DNA from: Kudoa neothunni
Taxonomy: Eukaryota > Animalia > Cnidaria
DNA: 32,961 bases
Direction: 5' to 3'
NCBI GenBank assembly: GCA_964304625.1
Contig: OZ199840.1
Span: forward strand, 2,932,028-2,964,988
The notes below the pieces were generated by a model. That model was not told the origin of the DNA and did no database searches. It saw nothing but the letters and a program-made list of their open reading frames with translations. Both the position numbers and the translations under genes were made by a program. Each line of letters opens with the position of its first letter. Within the stretch, counting starts at the first letter, position 1. Positions 17,424 to 29,181 of this stretch are shown here, one piece after another.

Positions 17424-20225
17424 CCACTTCCACAATCACTATTGTATGATTTTTAAATTCTAAATCTGATTAGTTCAATCAGTTTTAACTTTGCATTAAA
17501 ATATAATATGGTCAATACATAAACATATTTTAAAATTACTCCAGTTGCATTTTTAATGATCAATAAAGCGAATATATCTTTTTATTGCAGGTTTTCATTT
17601 TTTCGGTATAAGTTTTTAATATAAATTATTTTTAACTTTCAAAGTTATTAGAATATTTTGTTATTTCCAATTTTTTATTGACTTTAAACTGTTTTGAAAA
17701 CAAAACAACCTCATGATTTTGTTTCTTTTTTTAATAAAATTTATAGTGATTGTTCTGCTATGATAAACCAACATATTTTCGATTCTTTCTTATTTAACTA
17801 CTTTATTAATTATTTATTGAACATCAGCCTTATTTTATATACGTGAAAACTATTTTGCAAATAAACAACAGGTATATTAATGAATAACTTTATTTAGGGG
17901 GTTTAGCATTAGGATTAGTTATATAATTAGTATCATCGTGTTTTAGACTATATACTGATTTATGTGTAAAGTTACAGCATTTAAATAGTGATATAATAAT
18001 TGAAGAGCTCATTAAATAATCTCTCCTAAGGTATTGTCTTTATATATATTTCGCTACATTGTTATTAATAAACTAATAAACAAGGATTTTTAGTTGTTAA
18101 TCTGCTTATTTTATTTACAAAAAGTTATGTGGATATTATCTGTATTACGCTAGTAAACTATGAGATTAAAATAATTTTATTTATCAATTTATTTGACATT
18201 TTTGTTTCGATATAACATGAGTTTTCATTATGTTTCTATTTTATAAAATAATCATGTATTATTAGCATCACATATTAATCGTTTCGGATGTGTGTGATTG
18301 AATGGTTCAGGTTTACTTATTTTGGAAAAAGCTTTTCTCATATTAAAGATGATTAAAAAATACGGTCAGGGTTGAAGAAAAATTTTATTCCTTTGAATAA
18401 TCTTATTTAAAAGTTTATCTTTACGTTATTGTATAAAACTGATTTTTTATAGATGAAAAATATATTGCATCTTCAGTATATCAAGAATAAACATCATAAA
18501 TAAAATCCTAAAATATAAAAATAATCATTTTGACTTTAAAATATTGTTAAAAATTAACCCAAGGATAAATATATTAACTAAACACAGTGAGTTCTCGATA
18601 TTTCATAACTTTTCTTTGGTCCTAAAAAGTCATGCAGTTAGAAACACTTACGCATTTATTAGGCTCACATGCGCGAAATATAGCTAGTTTATTGTTGAAT
18701 TATTCTACTCTAAGGTATTTTTTAATCGAATATTTTTTAAAGCTCATTAAAAGAATATAAGGGAAGCAATTCTGCAGTGAATTTGCTTTAGAAGCACACT
18801 CATAATTAAATTAATGCCATTATTTGATTCTCAAGTTGAACACGTTTCCTCAAACGCCTAAAAATTGTTATCTTCATCATTTTCTCAGACCTCCTAAAAT
18901 TTATAAGGAATGTTATTTATCAATTTTTCATTTTCAATCTTGGTTTCCACTATTATATTTAAGTTCTCAATTTAGTTATCTTATGAAATGATTTAAAAGA
19001 ATAATGCATCCAAATTATGTTCATTCGTAAAAATGAAGGCAAGTTCAAAAAATTAATCCCCTATTTGAGTATTTACGTCGAAAAGTCATAACTCTGGATT
19101 AAATTTTATAAGGTTTAAATGTCATTATTTTTACGCCACATTTATTGATTTTAAGGGATTGAATTTATGCTAAAATATTTGATTCTATATATCGTTGAAT
19201 AAATATTTCTTTAACACACAGTAATATTCTATGCCAAGAACTTCACATAATTCTATGATAAATGAGTTATACTAAACTTAGGGGAGTTTTTGAACCGTCT
19301 CTGGATGTGAAGATCATCTATATATATGAGGTAAAAATCATTTTATTTTGTTTGGAAAAATTCAGATATAAATCCTTCAATTTTTTCCGTTGGATGAGGT
19401 TTTTTGATTCGATTGTGAATGGTATTTCATACATAAATAATTTATTTCCTTTAAAATTTTGGATTTTATAATTTAATCTATGGTAAATAGAGTAACTTTC
19501 CCTCTCAAGGAACCAATCCCTAGTGTGGTTTCACCTTTTTCATAATGCATACATCATTTTAAAATTTGATTCCTAATGATTTTTAAACAAATTTTGTGCA
19601 TCACTTTTATTTAAATAGAGCCTTAAATCCAATGTTAGTACAATTTAGTTTTTATATTTGTAAATTATAACTGAAAAACTAAATGCCAATTCATAAACAT
19701 CATAATTATGGTATTCCTCACACATATACATTATTTACTGCTCTTACACTAAAAATGACTTTCACATTCGAACAAAAAATTTTGCGTCAGTTGGGATCAA
19801 TAATACCATTATCGATACTCTGGAGTTTAAAATTTTAATAATTAAGAAGTTGAAAAATATTTTCATTTTATCCCTAATCGCAGTCATGTTGTATGGTGGT
19901 AGTTTTATAATCGCTTTAACTTACATTAGTTAAATTCTTCTTTAGTTCGAGAACTATTTAAACTTAATAATTAATTATTAAATCATGGATCTAATTTTTA
20001 TTGTTAAGTTATTGGAATTACAATATGCACCATTCATTTTAACTGTTAAGACTATTCGATGTTATAGTCTGTTGCCTTCTTGCATCTAGTTCCACAGTAC
20101 AAAATATCACGAAATAATACACCAACAGTAATAGGTTATCTAATTAAGGTTCGTTTTTGCGCCAGATTCAACCGCCTCTTAATTCCTCATGAGAGATTAG
20201 CGGCACCCCCCCATTGATTATCACA

Positions 20226-20312
20226 CAGTCGTGTCTCGGTATTGCGTAGAAAATTTGGACCGCTAACCTATTACACAATACAAAATTTTCACGCAATATC
20301 GAGGCACGACTA
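20226..20312. mobile_element. 87-bp pogo/Tigger-like (Tc1/mariner superfamily) MITE, almost entirely TIR
   Basis: CAGTCGTGTCTCGGTATTGCGTAGAAAATTT ... AAATTTTCACGCAATATCGAGGCACGACTA form about 30-bp arms. TA follows the right end and CA precedes the left (mutated TA TSD). Confidence 0.75.
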
Positions 20313-20635
20313 TATATCTTTTTAACATTAACTCTATGTTATTGATTCATCAAACCGTAACATTCAAATTTTCCAACCAACAGCTCGTTAGGATTTAGTT
20401 ATACAGAGCTTTAGGAAACTAAGATTCAAGGATTATGAGATTGAAATCCAGAAATTGGTTGCGCAATAGCGAAACCAATCAAAATTCCTCATTTTTTAAT
20501 AATTCAAATTTAATTTAAATATATGACGTGGATTTCGTTGGATAATTAATAACAAATGGCGCATTTAAATAAATATACTTATATTGAATAATACACAGAA
20601 GATAAACGTTAAATTAATCAATATCGAAGTCTTAA

Positions 20636-21893
20636 CCCTCGAAGGATGGTGACCCAAACAATTACGTGTGTTCCCAAGGGGGTCGGTTTGCGACCCTAGT
20701 GGTTTTCTACTATAATGATTGACTATGATTCTACCATTTGGTAGAGAGACTAATTAATCTTTTGACTATTAAAATATATGCTTAAAATAACCAGGCGAAA
20801 AAGAATTTGTTAACAATATCGTAACCATTTCAGGAGACATTACCAATTAGACCTATTCAAACGAAACTTAAATGGTAACTTTAACAGATTTAACTATTTT
20901 GGTTTAGTTTTTAATTAAATTGACTAAAATGGAAGCTTTTACGCCACTTTTAACACCAATATTAGGCTGATATGATAGACCATGGCAGTAACGGATGTTT
21001 ATCTCCAGTGACTTTCGGTAATTTAATATTCATTTATAAATTAAAATATGTTTACAACACATCTTGAGAAATAAAGAATAACGTTAATTCTAAATAAGTA
21101 AGGATGAATTTATTTGAATTATGAGAGAAAATATTTTTTATCAGAATATGAATATGATTCAAAGCTTATGTCTTTTAGCATGGTTTTAATCGTTCCACTA
21201 GTTCTAAGGGAACATTCCAGCTTAATTTCACTAAATATTAAAAAAAAATTTTTTAACATAAATGGAACTGTTTAATTTTATGGAAATGGGTGAATTGTTG
21301 AAATTTGGCCATATCATGACACAAAAATAATGCGACTAAGTTTTAATCGATTAATTATTAAACTAAACAATTAAATTCAAGAAAAATAATGTCACCCTTC
21401 AATTTACTATAATTTAAATTTAATTTACTGAAAAAATAAACATTATGAAATATTTAAAAAGCACATCAAGCGCCTATTTCGGATTTCAACGCGCAATAAC
21501 CAGGGCGACAATATTAGAGGGGTCAATCTCTTTAACCCTATTCCATTTTCGGAACCTTATATTAAATAACAAGAATGGTTAAAAATTACAATATTCCTCA
21601 ATTTAGTCGTGACAATATATATTGAGATTATCATTATTCTTATCACGTAAATTAATACACTTTACACAACCATATAAAATATTTTTAAATTACGTGTATC
21701 AATGCTACGTAACATCAACCGCAATTATTGAACCGTTAAATCCTATAATTAATCTGGAATTTTGTATTTATAAACAATACACAATAATCTAAGAATACAC
21801 GAACTCAAAAATTAAAATAAAATGTTTAAGTAGGGAAAAATAAACATTAACCAAAAGTGGGGTCACGAATGACCTCGTATGATCCCAGGAGTG
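20636..21893. mobile_element. Possible degenerate piggyBac-like non-autonomous element
   Basis: TTAA on both sides (20632-20635, 21894-21897). Ends CCCTCGAAGGAT versus reverse complement CACTCCTGGGAT (8/12). Subterminal GGGGTC...GACC motifs near both ends. Confidence 0.35.
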
Positions 21894-21920
21894 TTAATGT
21901 AAATATGAATATACAGTATA

Positions 21921-22732
21921 CAGTCGGTGGCTGGTTCTACTAATTTTTTAAAAAGAAGCGCAATTTGAATAATCAAATTCACTATCAATATAGAATATTT
22001 TTTACATGTTTTTATTAAAGAATTTAGATCTAAATAATATAGTACGGTTGAGAATTTTCCGACTTCTTGATCACGTGACTACCCAGTTTTACCCATTAAA
22101 AAAATAGATGAATTTTAATGTTCGAAAGAATTAAGTGAAATGAAAAAAATCAAAACATGAATTAATAAAATATGTCCACAATATCTCCCCGAAAGCTGTC
22201 AAATTTGTTACTATAAAGCATCAGATATATCCTTCATATCCAACCCCTTTGGCACCTTAAAAACCCAAATAAAATTGTTTAAATTACTGAATACAAATCG
22301 ATTAATGTTTTCAGTTGCGAATTTATTAAAATGAGTTTAAAAAATTATCCAATTTTGACAAAAAAGGAACAATCGATCGATCATGATCGCATTGGTGAAA
22401 GCTGTATTCCAAAATATTTTGACGAATTTTTTGTGATCAAAATAACTAATTATTTGTCCCTTAAATGTATGCAATTCAATTATATTAAATAATTAAGAAT
22501 ATTATTATATGCGCGTGCTAATAAGTGCTTAAAACCAGACGTTGCCAATTCCACACACATTTTTCCGCGATGCCGAAGGGATTACTCAAACCCGGGTAAC
22601 GAGTGTGCCTTCATTAAAAATTTATTAAACTTCATTACAAAAACTTGCGCATTTCAATTATGTTATTTAATAAATAATCGAATAATTTCCTGTAATTCGC
22701 GCGCAAAAGATGCGTAAACCAATCACTGGCTG
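21921..22732. mobile_element. Possible Tc1/mariner-type MITE relic
   Basis: TA|CAGTCGGTGGCTGGTT ... AACCAATCACTGGCTG|TA; 12/16 TIR identity and a TA TSD. Confidence 0.45.
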
Positions 22733-23195
22733 TATACAGATATTTATCCACTTAAACTCCAAAATTTTTTTGATATACAAAAATTTAAGAGAAAGTGGAA
22801 ATAATATACAAGCTAAATTTAATGTTTAACATACATTTTTTTGTTAATTATTGTAGTCTTATGAGATTACGCGTGCTTCCGAGTTGGTTCGAATTTAGAA
22901 TGGGAAAATATTTTAAAAATAACTATGTTTAAATCTCAACCTTCCTATCACTCTGATCTGATTTTTGAAGATAATCGTAGGGAAGTTTGCATAAAAAATC
23001 ACATCCAAAATGGTGATTTTTAGGTTCCTACACTACTCTCCAATCACAATTTTAGATAAAAATTCAGAATCCATGTGAAAATTGGATTTTATTATAGCAC
23101 AGAACGTATTATTTATCAAATCACCTAGTTCAGTCAATATTTATTCATTACGAGTTAAATCCTTGCACGCTTTCAAATATCGCGTGATAGACGAG

Positions 23196-23203
23196 TATAT
23201 AAA
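23196..23203 (+). promoter_or_regulatory. Candidate TATA box for the snoRNA cluster
   Basis: TATATAAA in locally GC-rich sequence, about 30 nt upstream of the first snoRNA terminal stem (23230). Confidence 0.45.
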
Positions 23204-23229
23204 CCGGCGTCGGCCGACTTTTGTCGTTA

Positions 23230-23297
23230 AAATCCATGATGTAACATCTTTCGGGACTAAGTGTTGTTTGTGCTGATAAATTTCACTGATTGGATTT
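23230..23297 (+). ncRNA. SNORD2: Box C/D snoRNA, SNORD2/snR39B-like (LSU rRNA Gm, yeast G805 equivalent)
   Basis: Terminal stem AAATCC/GGATTT; box C ATGATGT 23236-23242; guide CATCTTTCGGG 23245-23255, complementary to conserved LSU CCCGAAAGAUG; D' CTAA 23257-23260; C' GTGCTGA 23270-23276; box D CTGA 23286-23289. The +5 rule targets the G of CCCG. Confidence 0.85.
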
Positions 23298-23303
23298 ATA
23301 TTT

Positions 23304-23370
23304 TTGTTTTTATGATGATTTACACCGCCCCAGTCTTATGTAAAATGATGAACGGTTGATCTGAAAACAA
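23304..23370 (+). ncRNA. SNORD31: Box C/D snoRNA, SNORD31/snR67-like (LSU P-loop Gm, yeast G2619 / E. coli G2251 equivalent)
   Basis: Stem TTGTTT/AAACAA; box C ATGATGA 23312-23318; guide ACCGCCCCAGT 23324-23334, complementary to ACUGGGGCGGU; D' CTTA; C' ATGATGA 23345-23351; box D CTGA 23361-23364. Confidence 0.87.
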
Positions 23371-23423
23371 TGAAACCATTAGTTAAAAATTAATAAAAAC
23401 CCATTGTTTGTGAGCTTCTGGTT

Positions 23424-23516
23424 GCGTTGGCAATGATGATAGCTCAGATATGATTTCACACAGGGGGTTGTTTATAGCCCTCCATAACGTGATTCAGATT
23501 ATGAGAGCTGAGCCGC
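23424..23516 (+). ncRNA. SNORD97: Box C/D snoRNA, SNORD97-like guide for Cm34 of elongator tRNA-Met(CAU)
   Basis: Stem GGC/GCC; box C ATGATGA 23433-23439; internal hairpin at about 23462-23483; 14-nt guide TTCAGATTATGAGA 23493-23506, the reverse complement of TCTCATAATCTGAA (anticodon arm of eukaryotic elongator tRNA-Met); box D CTGA 23508-23511. The +5 nucleotide pairs with C34. Confidence 0.83.
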
Positions 23517-23774
23517 TTTTATTCTGCCTTAACTTGGACATTTCTTGCTCATATGAATGTTAGAGTTGTGTGTTTTTTAAGGCGGCTAGGCCCCAAAATC
23601 TTACTGGTTCGATGCGGGATGACATATGACATGTGAGGGAACGAATGAGCCTGTGACTTCGACTGTATTTCGAGTATTTGGCTCATTCTCATTTTTTGTG
23701 AAAGCCCCATTGAGAATAGTTTTCAATTTTGTTAATCACCTAAATATTAACAACAGCATGGTACAAATAAACTG

Positions 23775-25027
23775 TTAATATTCATTGCTTTCGCAATAGT
23801 TAGAGCTCGATATTATGAGATCTCCATAGGCTTGTTGGATCCAATCATTAATTTCAAAATCGTCTTGTCAACCAATCAAAGTGTGGTTCTTTAGTTATAT
23901 TGAATTTTATTTACCTAAAGGACAAGTTGATAAAATATTGGATCGTATTGGATAATTGTTGATTGCGTAAATAAGAGTGAGGATCGCCTTTTTTTGTTCT
24001 AAAGCAGTGTTTCCCAACCTCTTTTCTGTCGCGCTCCACCTTTTGCAAAAGTATTGTTTTTTAATTTAAACTGTTTATAACATTGAATGAAGCTCCCTAT
24101 CACACCAAAATTTGAATGCAATTAATATATACTTCTTTTCTCATTAAAATTAAAATGTATTAGACAAGCTCTAACTAAATTTATCCATGGACCTTAAAAA
24201 TTTAATCTTTAATTCTTCATACTGCCAAAGACAGCGTCAGGTGAATCTCATGATAATCTAACCTCCATTAGGAAAGACTTTGGTGTATACGGGGCTAATG
24301 GACCGAAAATAAATAATATAAATACAAAATTAATCAATATTATATTAGATTTAATAAAAAAAGGGGATATGCTATTCTAAATGAGACACGATTGTGAATC
24401 GAACCATTCTGATTCCATCTGGATGAAGATGTCAAATATTGCTAATAATTTTTATATAATTAGTCGTTGCTATTTTCAATGTTATTTTAAAAAGCTCAAT
24501 TAACTGGGAAATTTGAGAATAATTATAAATATTATGTTAATACATATCTTTTATAAAATATATGGAACTTTTTAATTTATTTATTATCAAAATATACTTA
24601 TCTAATAAAAAAATATAAGTAAGAAACCATACTAATTAGTATGAAGCCAAAAATTCTGATATTATATGAAAAAATTACGCCCGCTTTTTAATTTATTTCA
24701 AGTAGTTTCCGTTGTAACCAATTAAAGTAAGTTACCTGCCTCGGTATAAGCACATGAGATATTCCTTGTGGTACTTAAATATTTTAGTTTCTTGCGATCA
24801 CCGATAAGAGGTAATATAAGCTGATTTTATATTTTTTCAATTAAAATAAAATTTGAACTGTTTCGTAAAGCTATTTTGGATACATGAATTTTTCGAAATA
24901 TTATGAATCCTCGCAAAATTTTCATTGAGGAAACCAATGCTCCTAATCAATCGTTAACAATAATAGTAACTCAGTTAACGTGAATGATATCATATAAACC
25001 TGGTATTGAAATATTGAGAAACTTCAT
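23775..25027 (-). CDS. Hypothetical 114-aa protein, 5 exons
   Basis: Phase-consistent GT-AG exons 25000-25027, 24884-24942, 24736-24820, 23915-23998 and 23775-23863 give MKFLNISIPGALVSSMKILRGFIIFRKIHLILPLIGDRKKL...QQAYGDLIISSSNYCESNEY*. No homology recognised. Confidence 0.55.
24005..24480. mobile_element. Diverged, truncated second copy of the hAT MITE, in opposite orientation to 3120-3801
   Basis: Starts CAGTGTTTCCCAAC and is colinear with the reverse complement of about 3310-3801 (shared ATTAATATATACT, TTTTCTCATT-AAATTAAAATGTATT, GTGTATACGG, TATATAATTAGTC). Second TIR and TSD not found. Confidence 0.8.
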
Positions 25028-25137
25028 TTTACAACGTTAATGAAGAGGTATTAAATAACAATCAAAACATAATAAAAGATTATTCCAGACATAGAATATA
25101 AACGATTGATATATTATTGGAGTAAGTTATCAGGTTA

Positions 25138-26370
25138 TTACTCCTTATAATGTTTGAGAACTTTTTCAACCTCATCTTTTGATCCCATGTATATAGGAGA
25201 TGTTTGATGGATATATGCTGGTTGGATGTCAAGAATATCTTGGGCGGGTGTCACGGCCAATCCGCCAGCACTCACAACAATGTAGGCCATGGGAATACAT
25301 TCATAGAGCAATCTCAACTGAAAACCAAATCACATGAATGAATGAATGAATTCCACCCAATGAATACCTTTCCTTTGGGGAACTGCTTTGTGGAAGGGTA
25401 GATGTAAATTCCTCCATACATTAGAGTACGGTGGATGTCGCTAACCATTGAGCCAACATACCTTCCTTTGTACTGTTCTTTGGGATTCTAGAAGATATGA
25501 TTAGGCATTAGATTCAATTAAAGCTGTTTAGATAATTTTAAATACATTTGGATTTTTGATATCATTCAAATAGCTGATAAGATGGGGGTCGAAAGAACTG
25601 GCAGCACCTTCGTTAATACTATAGATGTGGCCCATACTTGGTACTCGAACATTCTTATGTGTTAGGATAAATTCGCCCACTCCCTAAAGCAATAAACTTC
25701 CATACACCACATAAAGATGCGATTTACTGGCTCTAAGGTGAATAAATTCACATGATTGTTAATAGCGAGTACCATAACAGTGGCACTACCGTATAACACA
25801 TATCCAGCGGCTATAAGATCATTTCCACGTTGAAACATGTCACTGTCTTTTGTAGCACCATCGGGTTTTTTCCAGATGGCAAAAATGGATCCAATAGGAG
25901 CCAAGCAGTCAATGTTACTGGATCCATCAAGCGGATCAAATGCTACAATATATCGAGAAGACTCAGAGCATGGCAAGTCGATTGAATGTTCGATTTCTTC
26001 AGAAATTAGAGTACAAGCAGTTCGTGAGGATGTAATATAATTGATGAAAAGTTCGTTGGAAATGACGTCTAGTTTTTTTTGAGTGTCCCCAGTTGTGTTG
26101 GTAGCACCACTCAAACCAAATCTATTCGCAATGAAACCCGTTAAATAATGATTTAAATCAATTCTATAGATTTCGCGCCCACTAAAATTTATACATTTTG
26201 ACAATTCCAGCTCTTCTCACAGCCATAGCTATAGTTTTGCATGCAGTAGCAATGGAAAATAACAAGTGTGTTAAATCACCCCTGGCGCTTGGATATTTCT
26301 TTTGCACGAGCAATATCCATCTGCCGAGGGTCATGCAATCAAGATCAATACCATCAACATTCACCGACAT
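25138..26370 (-). CDS. FBP1: Fructose-1,6-bisphosphatase class I, 5 exons, 335 aa
   Basis: Exons 26195-26370, 25728-26121, 25546-25683, 25368-25487 and 25138-25317. Motifs [48 protein letters not shown] and GKLRLLYEC. Confidence 0.97.
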
Positions 26371-26559
26371 TGGGAACAACTAACAGCAGTCACTTGATTA
26401 GGATTTAGATTGGAGCCTAGGATTATTTTTAAAAAATATGTAAAGTATTTAACTTTCTCGGCTCGCAGAGATATCATTTTGGTATTAAAACGCTCATTTA
26501 TTTTGATATATTTTATAGGAATAAAAAAGTTGTCAAATTTTGCGGAAAGGATTTTTGTT

Positions 26560-27240
26560 TACGCCACCTATCACCAACGGTCTAATCCCAAGTTACGCAA
26601 TAATTCCTATGGAGACGAAATCTCTTTTCATATTTGGCGCTCCAGTCATCCAAACATGAGAGTTTGAGTGTAGTAGAACAGTCAGTGAAAATCGGGGAAG
26701 GTCGCTTATCAACTGGTTGGTTAAATAGTTGATACAAATCTGCATTTAATATCGTCTAATGTGAATTTTAGTCAGTAGCTAGATGTAAAAAAGATTATTG
26801 TTCTTCATTTACGGAAAATTTTAGTAGTAGACCTAGATTCCCAAAATATCTCCATATTCTGAGTTACACCTAAGCACATCACTAGAATAATATTCGCTGT
26901 ATTTTCATAGTGTGGGCCTATTCACGATTATTAGTGAGGGAGAAAACTTAGATGAATACAGAAATTGAGTGAAGAAAACGCAGAAGTATGACCTAAACTC
27001 CATTCTCACATATGAGCTACATTAACTCAGTCTTCTTCCGAAATATTCAATCTGCATTTTATAGTTTTCCTGTGTGCGAAACTTTGGATTTGAAATTTCG
27101 CTATTATGCTGACTCGGCTTTTTGAGAGAGATAAGTTTTGACGCAGTTCCTTTTACGATAAAAAGCTTCTGGTTAAGATCTCATTAATGTATTTCAAATC
27201 TTAGAAGGTGCCATCACATTCAAACATGATTGCATACAAA
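26560..27240 (-). pseudogene. Possible degraded Tc1-like transposase relic
   Basis: Broken frames reading FLYSSKFS...KYSEYY...YGDILGI faintly resemble the Tc1 FSDESKF...GG..VWG region. No TIRs identified. Confidence 0.2.
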
Positions 27241-29181
27241 GCTAATATGACAAAAACTAGAAAAAATGAATTATTAATCAAAATGTGCTGAAATTGAACC
27301 AGAAATAATAATTATTGTGAGTATTTTAACCATTATTTACATATCTACGTATGTGTTAACTGGATGATTTTGATTTTAAATAATGAGGGAATTTTAACGT
27401 CGACTATAGGATAATCAACTATTCGACATTACATAAAGTAGCCGCAATGTAAAAATTCACCAATGCATCCTCTCACATTTTAACAACGCTAGAAATCGTC
27501 GATATTTGAATTAATTTTGAAAAACTCTCAAAAAACGCCATGATAACGAGTATTTTTTTTTAATTTTTATCATTATGTTCTAGAGATAATCGTAAATTTA
27601 TAAGTATCATAATATTTTTTATGATTTAGGAAAATACCTCTAAGTCTTAATTTTCTCGTTTTGATATGGTTATTTGTAAGATTTTACCGTATGACACCTA
27701 AGATGGAGGATATCTCCCTCCGTTAGACTACGTTTATTGAACTTATCATTATAATATAGTAGGATAGGATGGCATTGGTTGAAACTAGTTTTAAGCTGAT
27801 GCTCCGGATAAATAATAAAATTTTTTAAATTTATCGATATTCCTCCCACTGAACTATTGTAAACTCATTAACATTTCCAAATAAAAGTACAAGCATCAAT
27901 GAAAAAATTATATCAAATACCTTACGATGCACCGTATTTTATTTCCTAAAAAACTTCTAGATCAACCTTAAATGTATCACCTACTACTCATGTGTTGCAA
28001 ATATTTCTGCCCCGAATAAGATTATGAGCAGCAGATATAAAAATCTTATAAAGGAAGATGATCCAGAATTGGAAAAACAAAACTATTCGTTTCCTGGGTG
28101 AGAATACATGATTCATTTAAATTATTTTCACTATTTAATTCCATCATCTATAGTTGTACATATTTTCATAGATATCTTTATTTATTTATTATGATAATTT
28201 TGCGGATATCTTTCCTTGTTGACCATAAGGAAAAAATTTTTAGTTGATTATTGGCTAAATTCCTTAGATTTATAACTTTACAAGAGAAAAATTGTGATTT
28301 AAACGTACGACCCCAAGCTATATGATTATAAGTATCATATAATTTAACACATATATTCTCAGCTAAAAAAGCCCATAGAGGGTTTTTTGTTGTATAATTT
28401 AGTATATATTTATTTTTTGCATATAATAATTTTTATAATAAATTTCTTCTTTGTCGTTTTGTTTTAATTAATATAAATGATATTTTCAAGGCGGCCTCAC
28501 AGATATGATTATGTATGTGTGTAACTAATTATGTCGTCATCGACGAGAATTCGTTACACCTAATTTTAAAATCCTTCCTCAACTTTTTCTTATATAATCA
28601 AGATGCAATAAAAAACAAACACATTTGACGAATTCAATTTCTCATGAGAAGTTGCAACTCTTGCATTACAATATGGGAGAGGCTAGTTACATTGTTAATT
28701 TTTAATCCTAAATAGCGCGGTACGCACGCGCGTTAACAACTTTAAATCCTACTAACTTTTATTTACAAAGTATATAAAAACCTAATTTTTAAGAATTTTC
28801 TATATTTATTTGTTTTCGTTCTACCGCTTCGATCTTTGGAATAAAAAATAATTAATATTGTCAAAATTAATGGAACCTGATTATTATTCACCATGCAAAT
28901 AATCGTTTCTTACAATATCATACATCGAAAAGAACACTAACGAAAATAATTAATGTTTATTATTAATTTTTTTATCATATTTATTAAATATTTTTCAATT
29001 GAAATATAGTTTTTATCATTATCAATTATTTTGTACAGCGAATACGTAATTTTGATTCGGATAAATAATAATTGTGTAAATATAATTAAATCCGACATAC
29101 CGAATAAACTAAAGTAGGTAGCTAATTTTCCGAACTTTCGAGATTCTTACGATAAAAATTTTAGAAACGGTCTTATTTTAA

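Follow-up and report, generated by a model that had tools for sequence, protein, structure and literature searches.

A box C/D snoRNA gene of Kudoa neothunni with a SNORD97-type guide, predicted to direct methylation of the wobble base of elongator tRNA-Met

We find in an intergenic cluster of Kudoa neothunni a box C/D snoRNA gene of 93 nt, at positions 23424-23516 (plus strand) of the window—the whole stretch of 32,961 nucleotides analysed here, C3:2932028-2964988 of an assembly of 40.26 Mb in four contigs. This gene is likely to be the functional counterpart of the vertebrate SNORD97/SCARNA97, predicted as such from its sequence: it has the boxes and the terminal stem of its class, and a SNORD97-type guide complementary to the elongator tRNA-Met gene, tRNA-Met(e), of the same genome. 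It was recognised by reading the sequence and by a C/D scan; its best Rfam look-alike is ceN56 of Caenorhabditis.

Results

Architecture of the snoRNA

The original prediction described C and D boxes, a terminal stem and a 14-nt element placed one nucleotide before box D, and all are indeed present in the sequence, on the plus strand. Box C (AUGAUGA, 23433-23439) stands near the 5’ end and conforms to RUGAUGA; box D (CUGA, 23508-23511) stands near the 3’ end. The terminal stem is short, 3-5 bp: its 5’ half GGC (23429-23431) pairs with GCC (23512-23514), the beginning of the 3’ half GCCGC (23512-23516), and the GC at 23424-23425 and at 23515-23516 might extend the pairing, with a 3-nt bulge in between.

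The antisense element UUCAGAUUAUGAGA occupies 23493-23506, with a core of 12 Watson-Crick pairs at 23495-23506. Read as TTCAGATTATGAGA, these 14 nt are followed by a single G (23507), then by box D, so that the fifth base before box D is G23503, whose partner in the complement UCUCAUAAUCUGAA is the C of CAU. This is the layout of a box C/D guide: an antisense stretch of at least 10 nt, which stops 1-2 nt before box D and presents the target opposite the fifth base. A C’-like box (GUGAUUC, 23489-23495) appears from the metagenome and ceN56 alignments presented below, its UGAU being common to the metagenome look-alikes and to the ceN56 consensus. The U’s at the 5’ end of the element (23493-23494) are shared with this box, which leaves a free guide of 12-13 nt; the 12-nt core has exactly the spacer length used by the C/D RNP.

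The MFE fold contains, between box C and the C’-like box, an internal hairpin of 8 bp, three of them G.U (23463-23482). The z-score of the whole-RNA fold is -1.0, which is not unusual, and the MFE fold of the snoRNA alone is no evidence. The RNA had been announced as a species of about 90 nt without an obvious pyrimidine-rich insert, in good agreement with its 93 nt and with the 52% of pyrimidines in its internal 48 nt; an insert of the SCARNA97 type, which is a Cajal-body signal, is absent from these 48 nt.

A strict C/D scan of the 33-kb window (RTGATGA, CTGA 45-135 nt further on, at least 4 flanking pairs) gave two candidates, both in the snoRNA cluster, for a mean of 0.69 after block shuffling. 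As to the guide, the chance of an exact 12-nt match in the correct register is about 6e-8 per snoRNA.

The elongator tRNA-Met gene

The pairing had been proposed with an assumed arm, UCAGUCUCAUAAUCUGAA, which is absent from the genome G000. A profile search of this genome with RF00005 yielded 38 tRNAs; the initiator tRNA-Met (L061, arm GCAGGG-CUCAUAA-CCCUG) is among them, the elongator tRNA-Met is missing. Patterns that imposed a canonical T loop (GTTCRANNC), whether an intron was allowed or not, led to tRNA-like debris (L083, L090, L073 and L076) and to a false positive at C1:8060545; they missed tRNA-Met(e) because its gene has GTTTCGA, and GG at the end of the arm. The successful pattern combined the D arm and the anticodon (GG-N1-3-AGNGC-N6-YTCATA); apart from the initiator, it returned a single good candidate (C1:2997408).

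This elongator tRNA-Met-like gene (C1:~2997400-2997470, plus strand), known from the text of the pattern match from position 18 on, has a D loop GG-UU, a D stem AGCGC and A26, an anticodon arm UCAGU-CUCAUAA-UCUGG followed by G, a variable loop GGGGUC, a T stem GUGUG/CACAC round UUUCGACU, and the 3’ acceptor strand; a T6 run (terminator) lies 7 nt past the gene. An intron like that of plants was considered and rejected, the gene having none. The variable loop has one G in excess and the T loop, of 8 nt, one T; both extras sit in homopolymer runs. The gene could be a pseudogene, an unusual tRNA, or carry assembly errors. For the surplus G and T, an assembly error is plausible since the redundant copies of the assembly described below also show homopolymer indels.

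Two observations were made beside this search. At least seven dispersed repeat copies share CTCATACGTACATTTTGCCATGTTCGAAGC (L076, L079, L080, L087, L088, L091 and L092), and L076 is not a tRNA according to ARAGORN. The tRNA-Val(AAC) (L054, C3:9739763-9739835) has a T loop GGGATCGATACCC with A at position 54, which is initiator-like and unusual in an elongator tRNA.

Pairing with tRNA-Met and search for other targets

The guide pairs contiguously with positions 31-44 of tRNA-Met(e), by 12 Watson-Crick pairs (31-42) and two G.U pairs (43 and 44). The complementarity of the guide to the arm of its own tRNA-Met(e) is supported by the C1 gene found with the D-arm and anticodon pattern, although not in its announced extent: the 14 perfect pairs supposed an arm ending in UCUGAA, and the real one ends in UCUGGG. 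In this fit, C is opposite G42 and the U’s 23493-23494 face G43 and G44 instead of A; these two G.U pairs lie inside the C’-like box and may not form. C34 is opposite G23503, at the +5 position upstream of box D, precisely where the +5 rule had been said to place it.

The search for targets covered the genomic matches at 13-14 of 14 positions and 33 other tRNAs of this genome. The runner-up among the latter, Arg-UCU, has 9 contiguous pairs and is mismatched at the would-be target; the initiator tRNA-Met is outside the best eight and, by eye, matches little past the CUCAUAA loop. The exact complement of the 14-mer occurs at three places in the genome: the snoRNA, its assembly twin, and C2:4447595. 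This last site is antisense to a 111-aa ORF, the mRNA of which has the guide’s own sense and therefore cannot pair with it. No tRNA was found at the 30 loci with at most one mismatch to the 14-mer complement (three further one-mismatch sites lie outside this set), and 28 of them—the snoRNA copies being excluded—match no Rfam family at gathering score. No tRNA, rRNA or snRNA family occurs at these 28 sites, which is in favour of the original prediction. Searches of the genome with the 18-mer arm and, at up to one mismatch, with the 14-mer retrieved only the snoRNA and its twin, the site antisense to the ORF, and scattered single sites without tRNAs.

These data bear on the possibility of a real box C/D snoRNA that has another target (rRNA, snRNA or mRNA) or is an orphan, its match to tRNA-Met being without function. 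Orphans are common among C/D snoRNAs, which makes the question legitimate. We nevertheless consider this unlikely: no Rfam RNA lies at the examined genomic sites matching 13 or 14 of the 14 positions, the guide base opposite tRNA position 42 suits the tRNA of this very genome, and the element is the conserved one of SNORD97, for which tRNA-Met(e) was picked as a possible target after a search of stable cellular RNAs (PMC6601510). A guide for tRNA-Met(e) is the reading that we retain.

Genomic context

The window is AT-rich, with about 30% GC. The region of the snoRNA has no long ORFs. The 3’ end of an FBPase gene on the minus strand (25140-26380), whose GT..AG introns measure 44-72 nt, is about 1.6 kb away. 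A fragment of this FBPase scores 143 bits against mammalian FBP1/FBP2, versus 95-100 bits against those of yeast, plant, Leishmania and E. coli; the tRNA-Leu(CAA) of the genome is presumably animal-like. Both are in keeping with a probably metazoan, compact genome. The SL1 spliced-leader sequence has no occurrence in the 307 kb examined, which is uninformative.

A SNORD31/U31-like box C/D snoRNA (23304-23370, plus strand) precedes the SNORD97-type snoRNA, from which 54 nt separate it. It was retrieved by the C/D scan and by the Rfam models SNORD31 (29.1 bits, E 4.7e-4) and GlsR4 (30.8 bits), both scores being below the gathering score, and it carries, intact, the conserved rRNA guide ACCGCCCCAGUC. 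A weak possible third C/D RNA (23229-23297, plus strand) was read by eye, with an imperfect box C AUGAUGU, a box D CUGA at 23286-23289 and a stem AAATCC/GGATTT (Rfam SNORD2, E 1.8). Over the whole window, Rfam gave nothing at gathering score, and no tRNAs.

The intergenic snoRNA cluster combines guides of the rRNA and of the tRNA type.

The final ~15 kb of the window is repeated at 99.93% identity right after a gap of 200 N, which starts one base beyond the window end. The copies compared (window 17972-27771, the repeat probably extending to 32961, against L070 201-10000, L070 1-200 being N) are distinguished by 5 substitutions and 2 indels in homopolymers, i.e. 7 sites in 9.8 kb, and their snoRNA clusters are identical. 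The second copy of the snoRNA, 15.19 kb downstream, was accordingly rejected as a paralogue on account of its post-gap position and of the 99.93% identity: the repeated ~15 kb is most likely an unmerged overlap or a haplotig at a scaffold gap, and not a true duplication.

That the gene copy is silent or decaying, or resembles a snoRNA by chance, and yields no stable RNA, would be in keeping with the ordinary z-score of the fold, the shortness of the terminal stem and the odd loops of the tRNA partner. On the other hand neither box deviates from the perfect motif, the guide matches exactly over 12 nt and the U31-like neighbour has kept its conserved rRNA guide; that none of the 7 differing sites between the assembly copies falls in the cluster is weak evidence in the same direction. 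We find this explanation quite improbable, and favour a functional gene.

Three metatranscriptome runs under the same species label left 5.9 kb of this region, with the FBPase gene in it, uncovered; as even FBPase is devoid of reads, the organism is absent from these runs, which do not constitute a test of expression. The four runs X1-X4, in which the stretch is found, come from one sample, and the type of these runs is unrecorded; the contigs of X1, at a depth of about 6, show no differences.

Related sequences

Rfam scans of the snoRNA gave no SNORD97 match, even with the threshold relaxed from the gathering score to E<=10. The snoU97/SNORD97 family is cited under accession RF01291 (PMC3890542), and the SNORD97 model of Rfam is built on the longer vertebrate RNAs. 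The qualification as SNORD97-like made by the original prediction is therefore to be kept for the guide and the box layout, on which this label rests, and not for an overall sequence homology.

The best Rfam look-alike is ceN56 of Caenorhabditis (RF01643), with 18.1 bits and E 0.12 over 23427-23516, below its gathering score of 60 bits. The ceN56 consensus has the same succession of parts as the present RNA—the UGAU of a C’-like motif, then ACAGAUUAUGAGAG, then the terminal box, with a GGc/CCc stem—and its 3’ end reads ...augauACaGauuauGAGAG-AUGA-gGGc. The two differ by the internal region, ~30 nt shorter here, and by the terminal box, AUGA in ceN56 versus CUGA here. ceN56 was an unclassified RNA the level of which falls upon RNAi of C/D snoRNP proteins (PMC2442092), and we found no literature tying it to tRNA-Met. 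Considering these likenesses, ceN56 may be an unrecognised nematode counterpart of SNORD97.

Metagenome contigs were scanned once with TGATGA-N40-70-AGATTATGAGANCTGA. Seven of the 26 loci obtained are convincing C/D RNAs, in which the C’-like box, the guide and box D are arranged as here; the others seem to be fortuitous hits within coding sequence. L099, L105, L108 and L118, on contigs of ~20% GC, hold near-identical C/D RNAs of the SNORD97 type, with an identical UGAUUCAGAUUAUGAGA-C-CUGA and terminal stems of 5 to 13 bp (13 bp in three of these four). On L105, whose C/D RNA is at 960-1050, inverted (GGGGATT)n/(CCCCAAT)n repeats resemble telomeres and may indicate ciliate minichromosomes. L098, L114 and L115 are soil contigs of 45-49% GC, with a stem GGAUGC/GCAUCC and the guide GAAGAUUAUGAGA. 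Apart from a weak SNORD49 match, Rfam recognised no snoRNA family in the metagenome look-alikes.

In the lineages compared, the part of the guide that pairs with the loop is invariant. Its stem-pairing end varies by lineage, being CAGA here (tRNA UCUG) and GAAGA in the soil contigs, and published tRNA arms vary at the positions matching this end: vertebrates share the arm UCAGUCUCAUAAUCUGAA with Ciona, and fly shares UAAGUCUCAUAAUCUUAA with silkworm (Supplemental Fig. S4 of PMC6601510), the 3’ arm strand being UCUGA in vertebrates and UCUUA in insects (PMC6601510).

Discussion

The snoRNA, if it is transcribed as we infer, would assemble with Snu13, Nop56, Nop58 and fibrillarin on its C/D and C’/D’ motifs. 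The 12-nt spacer between the C’-like box and box D would then pair with positions 31-42 of tRNA-Met(e), i.e. the anticodon loop and the 3’ side of its stem—which supposes that this stem opens—and fibrillarin would methylate the 2’-OH of the wobble C34, opposite the fifth guide base before box D. A possible downstream effect, drawn from human cells, is a protection of the tRNA from cleavage in the anticodon loop.

C/D snoRNPs with non-methylating roles are known, so that binding to tRNA-Met(e) or its precursor might leave it unmethylated, the snoRNP serving as a chaperone or regulating tRNA processing or the production of fragments; the necessary opening of the anticodon stem would suit such a role. 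This is hardly probable, given a register that puts C34 exactly at +5, a canonical box D, and homologous human RNAs that do methylate (PMC6601510). Methylation of C34 is the function that we predict.

What does the gene bring? A SNORD97-type RNA in a non-vertebrate is already known, as are the mechanism and the target. The rarity and novelty claimed by the original prediction were thus overstated, for single SNORD97/SCARNA97 candidates have been published in Drosophila, silkworm, honey bee, Ciona, Arabidopsis and rape (PMC6601510). The snoRNA opens no new question; it adds one further lineage, with a very compact, AT-rich genome, in which the wobble methylation of tRNA-Met(e) is probably RNA-guided. 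Together with ceN56 and the metagenome look-alikes, it suggests a family broader than the list of 2019.

In this direction, we propose tentatively that the SNORD97-type guide may extend beyond animals and plants and be pan-eukaryotic, hence probably ancestral, judging from the RNA described here, ceN56, the maybe-ciliate contigs and the soil eukaryote contigs. If true, Cm34 of tRNA-Met(e) would be the sole tRNA methylation guided by RNA from archaea through eukaryotes, and the stem-pairing end of the guide would track the tRNA arm of each lineage.

In human cells, the methylation of C34 in elongator tRNA-Met is guided by SNORD97 and SCARNA97 together, and a knockout abolishes Cm34 (Vitali and Kiss 2019, PMC6601510). 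The present RNA likewise has one antisense element ...AGAUUAUGAGA that depends on the D box and lies a single base before it; as in theirs, this guide is complementary to the anticodon loop plus the 3’ side of the stem in tRNA-Met(e), with C34 at +5. As in SNORD97, the D-box element is complementary to the tRNA-Met(e) arm of its own genome, here read in the text of the pattern match. The number of genes is that of the non-vertebrates, one per genome, whereas all vertebrates have both SNORD97 and SCARNA97 (PMC6601510); a later review restates the joint guidance and this distribution (PMC7038934). Our RNA departs from SNORD97/SCARNA97 by its length of only 93 nt without a pyrimidine-rich internal stretch, by its two outermost pairs, which are G.U due to G43 and G44, and by its location in an intergenic snoRNA cluster, the vertebrate genes being lodged in an intron of EIF4G2 or LARP4.

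In archaea too, box C/D sRNAs direct the methylation of C34 in elongator tRNA-Met (Joardar et al. 2011, as cited in PMC6601510). They belong to another domain of life and have no demonstrated sequence relationship to the snoRNA described here, the Rfam model of archaeal sR49 giving 12 bits and E 4.5, which is noise. They nonetheless share with it the RNA-guided 2’-O-methylation, predicted in our case, of the identical nucleotide in the identical tRNA, with about 12 nt between the boxes.
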